Origin: Macrostomum lignano
Taxonomy: Eukaryota
DNA: 64,000 bases
NCBI GenBank assembly: GCA_002269645.1
Contig: NIVC01000629.1
Span: 124,001 to 188,000 of the forward strand
Reading direction: 5' to 3'
Both the position numbers and the translations under genes were made by a program. A model generated the notes under the pieces. The model searched no databases, was not told the DNA's origin, and saw only the letters and a program-made list of their open reading frames with translations. Positions 6,301-11,689 of the stretch are shown here, in pieces; the stretch's first letter is position 1; each line of letters opens with the position of its first letter.

Positions 6301-9300
6301 CAGTTGGGGTGCGGGTCTGGGTGTGCAGTTGGGGTACGGGTCTGGGTGTACAGTTGGGGTACGGGTCTGGGTGTACAGTTGGGGTCCGGGTCTGGGTGTA
6401 CAGTTGGGGTGCGGGTCTGGGTGTGCAGTTGGGGTACGGGTCTGGGTGTACAGTTGGGGTACGGGTCTGGGTGTACAGTTGGGGTACGGGTCTGGGTGTA
6501 CAGTTGGGGTACGGGTCTGGGTGTACAGTTGGGGTGCGGGTCTGGGTGTACAGTTGGGGTGGGGGTCTGGGTGTACAGTTGGGGTACGGGTCTGGGTGTA
6601 CAGTTGGGGTGCGGGTCTGGGTGTACAGTTGGGGTGGGGGTCAGAGCCAGTGTACATTACAACGGCCTAGAGCACATTAGTTAAAATCGTGTATTGTTTT
6701 ACTTGTGCCTCGGCGTCCGCGTCTTAGCAACTGGGAATTCGCTGTGCGAGGTCAGGTGCTCGTCGCCAGAGTATTTGCCGAACTTGTTAATTAGCAACTG
6801 CTCGTAGGTGCTCTGGCTTTGGTGCACCCGAATTTGCAGTCCAATGTAGTGCTGCGCCGCCTCTTTAATCGCTTTGATTAAATTGTCCCGGTCTTGGGTG
6901 GCAAATATGTGCTGCAAATTGGGGGTTTTATAGACGAAGTTACAGTGCGAAAGTGCCTCGTGACTGGTGTTCAACGGAGTGTGCGTCCCCGACGATAGGA
7001 CAGAGCGTAATGGTACAGCCACTATATTATGAGAAATGCTGTACGCAGGCATAATAATAATAATAATTGATTTCACTTGCCCTAATGGCCCGAGATGTGC
7101 AACCGACAGCTCAGCCGCAGCTATGGCGCGGCGCATCTGAAGGCTGCGTATGGCTGGCTGTTCAGTCCAAGGACACACACCCCCTCAATTACCCCAGATA
7201 ATGCTGGCACCCATTTTACAGCTGGGTGAACTGAAGCAATGCAGAGTTAAGTGTCTTGCTCAAGGACACAAACTGTTCCAAGTGGGTCGAGAATCGAACC
7301 CCCGACCTTCCAGTCGGGAGTCGGTACATCGGTCCTGACTGTCTAATCGTCAGGCATGTACACTCTCTGAGCCTTGGGGGTTGGTCCTCATGGCTGTGAA
7401 CCGCACGACAACCCCCCTCCCCAGCCCAATATCCGTGCACACAAGCCCCAAATAAATGTGGGAATCGAACCAGGGATCATGGCGCGTTTTTATGCTGAGC
7501 TGATTTACCCGCCCCCCGCGAACCAACTTGACTATTTTATGTAGAAAAGCGCATAAAAACTCACATTGCGTCCGAAGCCGCCGCAAACGACGGAAATTCC
7601 GCCGGGTAGGTCGGGAATCTTGAAAGACAGGGATTGGATTAGGCGAGAGCTGTTATCGGGATCCATTTTAAACTATACAGCTGTAGGCTTTTCAGCACAT
7701 GCAAAATCTTCTTCTGAATTGTAATATTAGTTTCTTATGCTTCTGGTTTGATTACTACTGATAATTGCAAAAACACAAATTACTATTAATTCTGCCACGT
7801 GTTATCACATTGTTATTGTTGATTATTAAACCTTGTATAATGCATACATATAATGAAACAACAACTACCACTATAATACTATTTTTGTCATTATTAATCA
7901 CCTTACTATTGCTACTAAAATTATGGCGTCTATTAGCATCAATGCTACCGAATCTTTTACTACTACTGCTACTGCTGCTACTACTACACAAGTACTACTA
8001 CTACTACTACTACTACTACTACTACTACTACTACTACTACTACTACTACTACTACTACTACTACTACTACTACTACTACTACTACTACTACTACTACTAC
8101 TACTACTACTACTACTACTACTACTACTACTACTACTACTACTACTACTACTACTACTACTACTACTACTACTACTACTACTACTACTACTACTACTACT
8201 ACTACTACTACTACTACAGACTAGACACTGACCAGCAGCAGGCATTCGATGTCCTTATAATCGTAGGTGCACAGCAGCGAGTTGCTGACAGGATCGAACT
8301 GGCACAGGCCGGCAGAGTTAGCGGCCAGCACGACATTCTTTCGCGTGTCCGACCAGTGCTGCTTGAATGCGTTGAACCTGGCCGGCGTTCTTGGCGTCTC
8401 AGCGAACTGGTGCTGAAATCGCAGCGCCTCAGTCAGGATGTCGGCCCGATGGTCTGAGGCGAACTTCATCTGATCCTTCTTGTTGCCGCCGACTTTCTTC
8501 ATCTGAATAATGAGCTCCTGAGGGCCGCCCTTTGGATTGGGCAGGATGTTGAAGAAATCGCTGTAGAGCCATTGGTTGGTGATTTCCAGAGTCTGGGGAT
8601 TGTACGTAGTGATGCCCTGCGTGCCTATGCTGAATATGCGCTTGTACCTGAGGGACAGGCAGTTGCGGATTAACATATTGCAAAAAGCATTTCAACTGAA
8701 GGGGGCAGAGCACCGGAACGTCGCCACTGGGTGCGGGGGGGGGACTGGGGGACATGCCCCCTAAGTAAAAGCTATGGGGAGGACATGACAATGCTTTGTC
8801 CTCCAACCCCACGTGACACGTTGTGGAAAGCAAGAATTTTGTTTCAGGGTGCTAAAATGAGTGCCTGCGGTGCCAAAATGAGTGCCTGCAGAAGAAGAAC
8901 AAATATTTTATTATATTTTTTTTAGAATTCCAAGTGATATTTGCACCTAAAAATTAAAATGGAGGTGTTATAAATAGCATAAGATGTTATAATAGATCTC
9001 TATCCTTTGTAACCCACTAAAACTCTAAGCAGATAACCTATTGGTAATGATCATCATGACAGCTTTTAAATGCTGATGTTCTAGCATTTTCTTATTTGAA
9101 AGACAATTTTCTTAATTTTAAAAGATCAGATACATGCCTTTCTAAAAAGAAACTATATAAATTTATAAAATAATTGTACTTTAATACTTTAGCTACTTTG
9201 GTATCAAATAAACATTTTCATATTATAAAACAATAAATACATTAGGCCAACAGTATTACATTATAAAAAGCAAAATATATCATTTTTACTTACTTTCCTT

Positions 9301-9382
9301 TCCATGATAACTTTGTAACATGAAAGCATGCCAAATCTTGATTTTCTTTCATCTGAGGACATGCATTTGGATTGTTGGACAT
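308..9382 (-). CDS. DNAJC13: DnaJ homolog subfamily C member 13 / RME-8, 5' part (10 coding exons; gene continues off the left edge)
   Basis: Exons (minus): 9382-9294 ([30 protein letters not shown]), 8647-8233, 7618-7565 ([18 protein letters not shown]), 6911-6703, 6021-5646, 4612-4256, 3303-2815, 2356-1794, 622-463, 370-308 ([21 protein letters not shown]). Phases join in frame. Splice sites are GT-AG except one GC-AG. The peptides are colinear with RME-8 as I know it (YKRxFSx[53 protein letters not shown]). Confidence 0.96.
672..1765. repeat. Intronic minisatellite, ~28-bp unit
   Basis: CAGCAGCTACCTGAAGGTC(A/T)AGAAT(G/A)TT tandem. Confidence 0.95.
2448..2810. repeat. Intronic minisatellite, 46-bp unit abutting the splice donor
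   Basis: CACACCTGAAGCATTCCTGACAGATTAAGACAAGGGACAGCACACT, about 8 copies. Confidence 0.95.
3335..4210. repeat. Intronic minisatellite, 30-bp unit
   Basis: TATGACCTAGAAATGACACAAAGCATCCAC tandem. Confidence 0.95.
4684..5612. repeat. Intronic minisatellite, 23-bp unit
   Basis: ATTGAAGGACCAAAGAGCGGCCT tandem. Confidence 0.95.
6068..6640. repeat. Intronic G-rich minisatellite, 25-bp unit
   Basis: GGGGTGCGGGTCTGGGTGTACAGTT tandem. Confidence 0.95.
7048..7325 (-). mobile_element. tRNA-derived SINE with CORE-like central domain, 5'-truncated copy in an RME-8 intron
   Basis: Box B GGTTCGATTC, core TCCTTGAGCAAGACACTTAACTCTGCATTGCTTCAGTTCACCCAGCTGTAAAATGGG and a (TTA)n tail. Clearly homologous to 47433-47708. 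Confidence 0.85.
7959..8217. repeat. (TAC)n microsatellite, ~75 pure units
   Basis: Uninterrupted TAC run from ~7992 to 8217, starting ~15 nt inside the donor of RME-8 exon 2. Confidence 0.98.
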
Positions 9383-11689
9383 TCTGAAGCTAAAAATAAA
9401 ATAAACTAAAATTTAGAAAAAATAAAAGATAAAATAAAAAGTCTGAAAAGTCAAAACAAAAATTGGAAGTAAAAATAGTTGTTTTTGCCTAGAAAGACAA
9501 ATAATTTATATATCTTACCTGTCAAAGCAGGACAAGAGCCTTGAAAAATTATAAATCTATTTAACTTGTTATAAATAATTATTAAAACCTTGTAACCTAA
9601 AATAGATTAATGAAAGATAAGATAGAACTTTAATAATTAGGGGATGCTTGCCATTTAAGGATGCTTGCTATCTAGAGTAAAGGATACTTTTTGTCTTGGG
9701 TTGCTTGTTCTTTGGGGATACTTGCTATCTATGGACTTTTGCTATCTAGAGATACTTGCTATTTAGGGTTAGGGATATCTACTATCTGGGAGGTACTTTC
9801 TATTTAAGGGGAATTCAGGCTTCTGCCTTCTTGCTATCTTTGTATTGTGAAAGCCTAATTTTGTTGCATCTATTTTATTTTAGGGAAAGAGATTTATAAT
9901 AAGCATCATTGTTGATAAAATTTTTACTTAAGTAAAGTGATTTATAAAATTAAAGGAATTTGTTCTTAAAAAATATGCTTTTTTAATGGATTTGCAATTT
10001 TGCAAAAATAATTTTTTCTCCTTGCTTAATTGCAACCTAAAGGAGCTAGGCCCTATCTAAATAGAGCAAAGACCTATTTAGTAGTCTGTTTGATAGACGC
10101 TAGAGCAATAGATAGAACTAAAGTGTTTTCTGATACAATCTCCTATGGCCATCTCTTTTGGCAACAAACATCATTTTCTACTTTGGCAGTATGATTATCT
10201 TGTAACACCAAATCAAACTTTAAAATAATATTATAAAACAAACTAGAAGATTAAGATTGCCCTTTAGCTAATATATTTTCCATTATATTATTAATAGAAA
10301 TCCTATTTATAAAAGTATTATTTTAGATAATTAAAGTTAAACTGCTTTTAAGTTTTGATGACATTACTTTCTTTGCAATTTTAAAACAATAATTTTTAAC
10401 TTTTGATGAATAAAATGATAAATAAAGAAGAATTAATAATATAGCTTTTAAGATATATCAATGACAATATTAATAACAGCAGATTAAAATAAGATAGAGT
10501 GAAAGACAATTTAAAATGAAGCTAATACATCCACCTGTTAATTAATTATTTTGTTTAGAGACACAAATGGAATACAATTGGTAGCTTTATTGCAATGCTT
10601 TTGCATGAGCTGTATACATGCATTGCAAACATAAGACAAGGAATTAATGAAATATTTGCTGATGTTTGAAAATTCCGACTAAAAGTTAAATAATCCTATC
10701 AATGACACTAGCAGAAATAGCAAAAAGTGCACCGCAGACAGAGACCGCAGTCGCTGCCTCGCATACCACAAACTTATTGTACCATACCATGGAATTGAAC
10801 CACCCCTAAAAGACTATACGTCGAAACTGATTTTCAATTTTACTTATAAATTTTTTGAAACTAACTTCAGTCTCCAGTTACAGTCGGCTTCAGTTTCATT
10901 TACATCGACAATCATACTAAAAGTGGTGTTGATGCCATACGTAAAAATCGATAGGCCTAAATCGAAGGCTTCTTAGAAAAATTGAAAGTTGAAAAACAAA
11001 AATCAAATTCATGGTAATCGCATTTAAACTAGTGTCTTAAACTATTGCATCAGTAAAGGCAAAAATCGTCCGTATAAAAAGAGATGATCAACTATTATTC
11101 ACTTTTGAATGCTTCTCACTCAAGATACAGGAAAAACGACAAGATGTTTTATACTGTGCATCTTTTGTGAGCCATCTTATATTTGTGAGCCATCTTGTTT
11201 TATGGTTCAATCTTATTTATACGGCCTGTGTGCGTATAAATGCTGGACCTTACTTGATCGCATCAAGGGGCTATCGGCCTCAAACTGCGGCGAGGCATAC
11301 GACCAGAATTAGCCACCGGCTGCTCGCGGCCTGAGCTGCGGAGCGCTGCTCGATTGCCACATTCTTCGGATGCCGAGAGCGAAACCGCAGAGGGTGTGCC
11401 CATGGACTATGACCGCGCAAGGCGTGTTGACGAAAGGTCGGCCGGTCTGCAGGAGACTGAGCCGGAAGTTCAGCGCGCACGAATCATGCAGACTCGAGGC
11501 CCTGTGCGTGTGGCAGGAAAGAGATCGCTGTACTAAACATATGAGGCTAAAGGAAGCCGGGCTGCTCTCGCAGAGGCCTACAGTCAGTGACAGCTGCTGA
11601 CAGCCGTGAAGGAGATAATCCATCAGATGAGGACGGCTTCCTGCTGTCCAGTGAGAAATTCAAGCAGCCGCCATCCGGAAAAGAGCAGC

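Follow-up and report, generated by a model that had tools for sequence, protein, structure and literature searches.

Silent sites of the first RME-8 coding exon in Macrostomum lignano share the base composition of the surrounding AT-rich block

The first coding exon of RME-8 (DNAJC13) in the flatworm Macrostomum lignano has silent sites with the composition of the AT-rich, CpG-depleted DNA that surrounds it, in contrast to the remainder of the gene. We regard this as a clean local instance in which the base composition of the neighbourhood overrides codon usage, and it involves no new kind of mechanism. We examined this exon in a window of 64,000 nucleotides (positions 124,001 to 188,000 of contig NIVC01000629.1); all coordinates below are positions in this window. 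An earlier note on the same DNA had proposed that a regional process that erases CpG in TE-rich blocks had extended across the exon and altered its silent positions. The exon, the host origin of the block and the block-like silent sites were borne out by our analysis, while the TE relics, the CpG-driven rewriting, the active eraser and the spreading were not.

Identity and codon usage of exon 1

The coding sequence of M. lignano RME-8 does begin in exon 1. The exon lies on the minus strand at 9382-9294, where it reads ATGTCC...GGAAA|GTAAGT, and its 89 nt comprise 29 codons plus 2 nt, ending in phase 2. Intron 1 (8648-9293, minus strand; GT-AG, 646 bp) separates it from exon 2 (8233-8647, minus strand), which begins at 8647 behind cctcag| and completes the AAG codon that is split across the junction. 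The coordinates, the translation and the splice phase given earlier for the AA|GTAAGT exon end all hold. Using a splice-junction search and translation, we placed exons 3-10 on the minus strand between 7618 and 308 (7618-7565, 6911-6703, 6021-5646, 4612-4256, 3303-2815, 2356-1794, 622-463, and 370-308). The gene extends beyond the window start. Exons 1-5 carry no annotation on the contig.

Several gene models agree on this start. The RNA-seq-based models PAA87813.1 and PAA58818.1, which represent paralogous copies, and the UniProt model A0A1I8HXS4 open identically with exon 1 and its junction, confirming the earlier assignment of this exon. The N terminus is the same in P0245 and P0246, both transcript-based, and in P0125, and the translation in the window is collinear with the paralogue P0245, from which only a few paralog-specific residues differ. 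The joint translation of exons 1 and 2 matches the Pfam domain RME-8_N (PF19432) from residue 19 onward (E = 9e-56). The J domain (PF00226) and the GYF_2 region (PF14237), which belong further downstream in a part of the gene that the window does not cover, were both found in P0125 and in P0245, a full-length paralogue. In both Lingula and Capitella, intron 1 falls in the same lysine codon, likewise in phase 2 (AA|GT), and comparison with the first 36 residues of the Lingula protein gave further support for the identity of exon 1. No alternative exon encoding the RME-8 N-terminal motif was found elsewhere in the window. When we searched for RME-8 proteins with a 382-aa query, only fragments of 227-634 aa were returned, without a Macrostomum match; full-length proteins were recovered with a query padded to 1520 aa by repeating its own sequence.

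A candidate spliced-leader trans-splice acceptor, CTTCAG (9384-9389, minus strand), can be read 1 nt upstream of the ATG and fits the motif published for M. lignano, [T/C]TNCAG (PMC8629364). A second candidate acceptor, CCTCAG, ends at 9353, directly before the codon for M11.

Codon usage in exon 1 is inverted relative to the rest of the gene, and the counts reported in the earlier note all hold. Six of its 26 degenerate codons end in G or C, compared to 19 of the first 26 in exon 2 and 101 of 134 over the whole of exon 2. Exon 1 contains no CpG, while exon 2 contains 27. GC3 is 0.23 in exon 1 versus 0.60-0.84 in exons 2-10 (Fisher p = 2e-7), with 0.76 in exon 2. At four-fold degenerate sites, the GC content of exon 1 is 0.11 (n = 9), compared to 0.27 in the surrounding block. 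The low GC3 is even over codons 1-15 and 16-29 and steps to 0.75 exactly at the exon boundary. To recode exon 1, we drew 20,000 times from the gene's own codon usage; the recoded exons contained 19.6 +/- 2.1 G/C-ending codons, never six or fewer, and 3.7 CpGs were expected, with a probability of 0.002 for none. Although the exon is short, at 29 codons, and translation may in fact start at M11, the bias persists when counted from M11 (3 of 17), the exon is the same in three independent gene models and its intron phase is conserved. With these results and the Fisher test, it is highly improbable that the finding is due to chance or to an error in the choice of exon or start codon.

The surrounding block, its substitutions and the other exons

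The block that contains exon 1 is AT-rich, CpG-depleted and single copy (8926-10700; GC 0.27, CpG observed/expected [o/e] 0.03, GpC o/e 1.9). It had been described as free of CpG, which is nearly so: the 1711 bp from 8930 to 10640 contain one CpG (GC 0.27, o/e 0.03), and a run of 1230 bp at 8868-10098 contains none. By comparison, CpG o/e is 0.9-1.0 in GC-rich DNA and exons. Across the window, low GC and CpG loss coincide. The compositional boundary lies at about 8925, within intron 1, and the 3′ 280 bp of this intron are GC-rich and contain CpGs. The block is likely to be an outron or promoter together with the 5′ part of intron 1. Of the decay products of CpG, TpG has an o/e of 1.15 and CpA of 0.95. 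The RIP index, (CpA+TpG)/(ApC+GpT), is 1.42-1.47 over 9001-10500, above the RIP threshold of < ~1.03.

All three subgenome copies carry the block with the same composition (contigs 215 and 2328: GC 0.27-0.28, 2 CpG each), indicating that it is old and that it is host DNA, as had been proposed. The copies differ by 5-10% in the block region. A three-way MAFFT alignment revealed one stretch of 130 bp (9266-9395, minus strand) that is identical in all three and takes in exon 1 together with 13 nt on its upstream and 28 nt on its downstream side; no other identical run in the block exceeds 47 bp. This identity leaves room for selection on the silent sites of exon 1. However, we estimate that ~7% divergence would give ~1.8 silent differences in 26 sites, and thus the observed zero is not significant.

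The block does not appear to be TE-rich or flanked by TE relics. We scanned 8900-10800 in six frames, along with four upstream ORFs that were RT-like by eye, and obtained no Pfam match. No repeat matching the block was found in about 190 kb of window and loci, where the only matches were the paralogous loci themselves. Rfam and tRNA scans of 6500-12000 yielded only a sub-threshold match to mir-33.

We polarised substitutions among the three subgenome copies by local topology, with contig 215 as the outgroup in places; a looser scheme that counts all singletons of contigs 215 and 2328 led to the same conclusion. The counts are small (8-23 per class) and come from paralogues of one inbred line. 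In AT-rich non-coding DNA, GC-to-AT changes numbered 14 of 1780 sites and AT-to-GC changes 8 of 4162, giving an equilibrium GC of 0.20. Coding DNA had 16 GC-to-AT and 3 AT-to-GC changes, for an equilibrium GC of 0.21 versus a current value of 0.58. In non-coding DNA, GC-to-AT changes per GC site were equal in the AT-rich and GC-rich compartments (0.0079 versus 0.0082, p = 1), which gives no support to a CpG-erasing process active since the subgenome split. AT-to-GC changes were 3.7 times more frequent in GC-rich than in AT-rich non-coding DNA (0.0071 versus 0.0019, p = 0.0012), a difference that ectopic conversion in GC-rich repeats could inflate, and the equilibrium GC of the two compartments is 0.46 and 0.20, respectively. 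This pattern in the non-coding DNA, more AT-to-GC with equal GC-to-AT in GC-rich DNA, is what GC-biased gene conversion would give; coding DNA, however, has 16 GC-to-AT versus 3 AT-to-GC changes, and all counts are small. CpG loss accounts for at most ~4 of the about 14 (13.6) G/C-ending codons missing from exon 1, which does not support the proposal that a CpG-erasing process rewrote its silent sites.

The idea of a regional process spreading over exons finds no support in the other exons of the gene. RME-8 exons with one AT-rich, CpG-poor or CpG-free flank keep a GC3 of 0.57-0.88. Over 13 RME-8 exons, GC3 does not follow flank GC (Spearman rho 0.19, p = 0.53; -0.03 without exon 1), and thus a simple regional rule fails. 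Exon 1 is the only RME-8 exon enclosed on both sides by AT-rich DNA (n = 1).

The 5′ coding ends of genes in this DNA are not generally AT3-rich, at least in a small sample: codons 1-29 of MRPL11, ADAM, ARP, a 321-aa gene and a 701-aa ORF have a GC3 of 0.70-0.82, even where the upstream GC is 0.30-0.34. As annotated, MRPL11 consists of a 192-aa ORF plus 9 in-frame upstream residues. Orthologous exons are divided. GC3 is 0.67 in Capitella and 0.80 in L009, the closest relative that we found, whose exon 1 codons contain several CpGs; in Lingula, which is itself AT-rich, exon 1 is AT3-rich as well (0.24 versus 0.48, p = 0.02). These comparisons address outcomes that the earlier note had listed as refuting it, and for the most part such outcomes were not observed.

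Explanations for the composition of exon 1

The explanation we favor, at roughly even odds, is that the silent sites of exon 1 are at an AT-biased mutational equilibrium and escape the GC-favouring bias that holds the other exons GC3-rich. Point-substitution input at unconstrained sites would be AT-biased, leading to an equilibrium GC of about 0.2. As the composition of exon 1 matches both that of the block and this equilibrium, its silent sites behave like the neighbouring neutral DNA. The other exons would be kept well above that equilibrium (GC3 0.6-0.84) through a fixation bias toward GC, for example GC-biased gene conversion or codon selection. This bias would fail to reach exon 1, a short exon of 89 nt that lies wholly inside an old AT-rich, CpG-depleted, single-copy stretch of 1.7 kb. 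In this account, the exon and its junction, the compositions, the age of the block and the substitution rates come from the data; methylation or a recombination-cold state of the block is inferred, as is the reason why the GC-favouring force would miss exon 1. CpG loss would be a real but minor contributor, most plausibly through germline cytosine methylation of the AT-rich stretch.

That the exon concerned is the first one suggests another explanation, in which selection on the mRNA 5′ end keeps its silent sites A/T-rich and the match to the flanks is a coincidence. The benefit could be weak structure at the start codon, or context for spliced-leader trans-splicing or the first-intron donor. 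AT-rich, weakly structured 5′ coding ends favour translation initiation, and exon 1 resembles them in that its AT-rich codons open the coding sequence. Selection of this kind would also fit the 130 bp of exon and splice signals that are identical in copies otherwise 5-10% apart, the AT3-rich exon 1 of Lingula and the indifference of the other exons to flank composition. However, five other genes start GC3-rich, as do two of the three orthologues (Capitella and L009), making selection on the 5′ end unlikely. Moreover, the bias of exon 1 is even over its 29 codons, with no decay away from the ATG, and stops at the exon boundary.

We consider it somewhat less likely still that regional C-to-T hypermutation, methylation-driven or RIP-like and aimed at TE-rich blocks, spread over exon 1 and rewrote its silent sites. 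The contrast in CpG o/e between the block and GC-rich DNA or exons, the coincidence of low GC with CpG loss across the window and the presence of DNMT1 and DNMT3 in M. lignano all favor such a process. In addition, the block is older than the subgenome split, which gives room for a past burst, and, with its target sites gone, the process may by now be exhausted. Set against this, neither a TE protein relic nor a repeat was found in the block, its RIP index is not < 1.03, there is hardly any excess of TpG and CpA, the two compartments now have equal GC-to-AT rates per site, and exons adjoining other CpG-free stretches are untouched. CpG decay explains only the ~4 codons noted above and, by our own arithmetic, could not bring GC from ~0.5 to 0.27. 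Slightly more doubtful again is a kb-scale two-state genome, in which AT-rich blocks would be germline-methylated and would have become CpG-free and AT-rich through domain-wide cytosine decay that does not spare the host exons inside them.

Relation to known systems

The composition of exon 1 resembles regional non-adaptive bias of the isochore or GC-biased gene conversion type (PMC5576983, PMC9246145) in that silent sites match the surrounding non-coding DNA and two compartments with different equilibrium GC are present. It differs in scale, which at RME-8 is ~1-2 kb with a switch within one gene across a 646-bp intron, and in that the composition of the other RME-8 exons does not follow that of their flanks. 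In a literature search, we found no publication on codon usage or isochores in Macrostomum.

In fungi such as Leptosphaeria maculans and Neurospora, RIP leaks into single-copy genes beside AT-rich isochores. Exon 1 is likewise a functional coding segment in AT-rich DNA with AT-shifted silent sites. Unlike the fungal cases, the host is an animal, the block is non-repeated and has a RIP index outside the RIP range, the depletion is CpG-specific and there is no present GC-to-AT excess. If the two-state genome were true, it would be an animal counterpart of fungal RIP leakage, with RME-8 exon 1 as its internal witness.

Mosaic animal methylomes offer a third comparison. As in these methylomes, blocks in which CpG is nearly absent adjoin DNA with a CpG o/e of ~1, and M. 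lignano retains both DNMT1 and DNMT3, with low levels of 5mC (PMC11292947, PMC9246332). Gene bodies form the methylated, CpG-poor compartment of most invertebrates (PMC11292947), whereas here CpG is plentiful in the exons and missing from the AT-rich non-coding blocks. According to a published report (PMC9246332), the methylation pattern is not known in any free-living flatworm. Our prediction is that 5mC would be found on the CpG-free AT-rich blocks and not on the CpG-rich exons, opposite to the gene-body pattern that is usual in invertebrates.

RME-8 provides a within-gene control for codon usage: within the same transcript, and hence at the same expression level and with the same tRNA pool, 29 codons have the opposite usage to the next 900. 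Such opposite synonymous usage within one transcript argues that GC3-richness in M. lignano is not simply the result of translational selection on the whole message.

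The first coding exon of RME-8

Exon 1 of RME-8 (window 9382-9294, minus strand) runs from ATGTCC to GGAAA, comprises 29 codons plus two bases, and is followed by GTAAGT. Exon 2, which starts at 8647 on the minus strand and is preceded by cctcag, completes the lysine codon split across intron 1. In the translation of the two exons, a Pfam RME-8_N match begins at residue 19. We compared the N-terminal protein encoded by exon 1 with the start of Lingula RME-8, and a search of the window for an alternative exon found its motif encoded nowhere else. Both other copies of the gene have NCBI models, PAA87813.1 (2291 aa) and PAA58818.1, that start with the same exon and junction, as does UniProt A0A1I8HXS4; the evidence behind the NCBI annotation comprised RNA-seq, trans-splice-site reads, and a transcriptome assembled de novo (PMC5730564). 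Intron 1 interrupts the identical lysine codon in the same phase in the brachiopod Lingula (L007 3001-3084), the annelid Capitella (L008 3001-3069), and the flatworm. As three models share the exon and its junction, and Lingula and Capitella share the intron phase, the earlier note was right to call this the real first coding exon, which is already modelled on the paralogues. The NCBI model on the window's contig (PAA79531.1) is partial and begins at exon 6, so exons 1-5 (window 4621-9382, minus; locus L006) are unannotated on this copy.

The model that we built has ten exons within the window. Its translation is collinear with P0245, a full-length transcript-based model of a paralogous copy, with few paralog-specific residues differing. 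P0245 also confirms the junction of intron 5 (window 5645-4613, minus), a GC-AG intron; the UniProt model P0125 lacks VTFAQ at this junction. PAA58818.1 (1038 aa; contig NIVC01002328) departs from the conserved frame past about residue 1000, meaning that either this copy is decaying or the assembly is wrong here.

One nucleotide ahead of the ATG, CTTCAG (window 9384-9389, minus) fits the published trans-splice acceptor motif and is, by sequence, a candidate acceptor. The M. lignano spliced leader has ATG at its 3′ end (PMC8629364). Trans-splicing at the candidate CTTCAG (9384) would place the leader ATG out of frame, and at the candidate CCTCAG (9353; window 9352-9358, minus) in frame with MKENQDL.

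Silent sites of exon 1

Exon 1 contains no CpG and only 6 of its 26 degenerate codons end in G or C, against 19 of the first 26 in exon 2, exactly as counted in the earlier note. Across all of exon 2, 101/134 degenerate codons are G/C-ending and there are 27 CpGs. Exons 2-10 have GC3 values of 0.60-0.84, whereas exon 1 stands at 0.23 (Fisher p = 2e-7). When exon 1 was recoded with the gene's own codon usage, 19.6 ± 2.1 codons ended in G or C, and none of 20,000 trials yielded six or fewer. Converting all third-position CpG bases of such a gene-typical exon still left 15.8 G/C-ending codons, compared to the 6 observed. A CpG eraser is therefore insufficient and a general A/T shift is needed; of the proposal that a CpG-erasing process rewrote these silent sites, CpG erasure survives as a minor part.

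One alternative is selection for A/T-ending codons at the gene's 5′ end. Codons 1-29 of five other genes, the single-exon MRPL11 (29429-30007), the ADAM gene, an actin-related protein, a 321-aa gene, and a 701-aa ORF, have GC3 of 0.70-0.82, even when GC content is 0.30-0.34 in the 300 nt upstream. Within RME-8, GC3 is 0.23 in codons 1-15, 0.23 in codons 16-29, and 0.75 from codon 30, placing the step at the exon boundary. The orthologous exon 1 codons gave a divided answer, being AT3-rich in Lingula (GC3 0.24, 6/25, versus 0.48, 193/401, in the remaining mapped N-terminal exons; p = 0.02) but GC3-rich in Capitella (0.67) and in a transcript of the closest relative found (0.80; run ERR14707600). 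A need for A/T-ending codons is therefore not conserved here.

The AT-rich block in three copies

The block surrounding exon 1 (window 8930-10640) has a GC content of 0.27, one CpG (o/e 0.03), a GpC o/e of 1.9, and a CpG-free run of 1230 bp. The MRPL11 gene of the window shares 99% identity with an M. lignano protein, and window 12000-8301 matches contig NIVC01000629.1 of Mlig_3_7 at 100% identity in reverse orientation. Mlig_3_7 carries the region in three paralogous copies: the window itself (contig 629) and contigs 215 and 2328. This agrees with the three subgenomes (S, L1, and L2) described for M. lignano (PMC10733133). In all three, the block has a GC content of 0.27-0.28 and 1-2 CpGs, and the window copy diverges by 5-10% from the other two; the block is thus host DNA older than the subgenome split. 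It is single-copy, with matches only at the paralogous positions in about 190 kb of window and loci. No TE domain turned up in the block when it was scanned with Pfam in six frames, and Rfam and tRNA scans around it found nothing credible; a mir-33 match at 10585-10635 (plus strand; 25 bits, E = 0.021) falls short of the gathering score of 50 and probably arose by chance in the AT-rich sequence. The block is old host DNA, and the silent sites of exon 1 share its composition; a TE origin for it finds no support in these scans. The three copies agree completely over a 130-bp stretch containing exon 1 and its splice signals (9395-9266), and no other perfectly matching run in the block exceeds 47 bp. 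Divergence of the window copy from its two paralogues is 4-8% in an island from about 14900 to 6600, compared to 0.5-2.5% in most other aligned segments, and the closest pair among the copies shifts along the region.

Tandem repeats make up 34% of the window (for example, 671-1724, 3336-4209, 4677-5617, 6080-6642, 15457-17825, 50246-53206, and 60585-62351). Minisatellites with periods of 16-48 bp occur in nearly every intron of the RME-8, ADAM, actin-related, and TBL1-like genes, and several are fully CpG-free, with a GC content of 0.42-0.50. On contig 215, a 4.2-kb minisatellite array (L001 1901-6073; GC 0.39, CpG o/e 0.55) lies inside the 30-35.6 kb AT-rich block (window about 33906) and is missing from the window copy. 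This AT-rich block also holds decayed 14-bp arrays and inverted repeat pairs (32482-32603/32920-33043 and 34548-34771/35079-35203; 120-125 bp, 81-84% identical), which are possibly old repeat relics. A SINE-like element in RME-8 intron 3 (about 7100-7470, minus) carries tRNA box-B-like GGTTCGATTC motifs; ARAGORN called no tRNA in it.

Substitution bias and regional context

An alignment of the three copies spanning about 60 kb, with tandem repeats masked, provided 20,511 usable three-way sites. Changes confined to one lineage were polarised against the remaining two copies, leaving out the local outgroup lineage. In AT-rich non-coding DNA, GC-to-AT changes numbered 14/1780 and AT-to-GC changes 8/4162 (equilibrium GC 0.20); in GC-rich non-coding DNA, these were 23/2800 and 19/2671 (equilibrium GC 0.46). 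Counts are small. The GC-to-AT rate is equal in the two compartments (p = 1), giving no sign of an active eraser, and the AT-to-GC rate shows a 3.7-fold difference (p = 0.0012). Bootstrapping 500-bp blocks and removing clustered changes, both on a looser polarisation, gave the same direction. No clear hypermutability was evident at the CpGs of exons or of GC-rich DNA, fitting the CpG o/e of about 1 there. On these small counts, point-substitution input is AT-biased everywhere, the block and the silent sites of exon 1 are at an AT-biased equilibrium, and the polarised changes reveal no extra erasure in the block today; a past burst of erasure may have occurred. Coding DNA (within window 1-30007, plus the part of L006 outside the window) has acquired 16 GC-to-AT versus 3 AT-to-GC changes since the split, and its GC content looks out of equilibrium (equilibrium GC 0.21 versus 0.58 currently).

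The earlier note had the regional process spreading over a functional exon. No spreading is seen: RME-8 exons flanked on one side by AT-rich or CpG-free DNA retain a GC3 of 0.57-0.88, and in the contig-215 copy the GC3 of 13 RME-8 exons does not track flank GC (rho 0.19, or -0.03 without exon 1). Exon 1 is the only RME-8 exon enclosed on both sides, so the regional case rests on one exon. We propose that a GC-favouring force misses exon 1.

The note's interpretation is thus partly supported. We also tested the block against the criteria for RIP, which it did not fit. The nearest known parallels are a non-adaptive regional bias in nucleotides that shapes codon usage (PMC5576983, PMC9246145) and CpG depletion linked to methylation. 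Since M. lignano retains DNMT1 and DNMT3 (PMC11292947, PMC9246332) and its methylation pattern is undescribed, the block-wise CpG loss yields a testable prediction.
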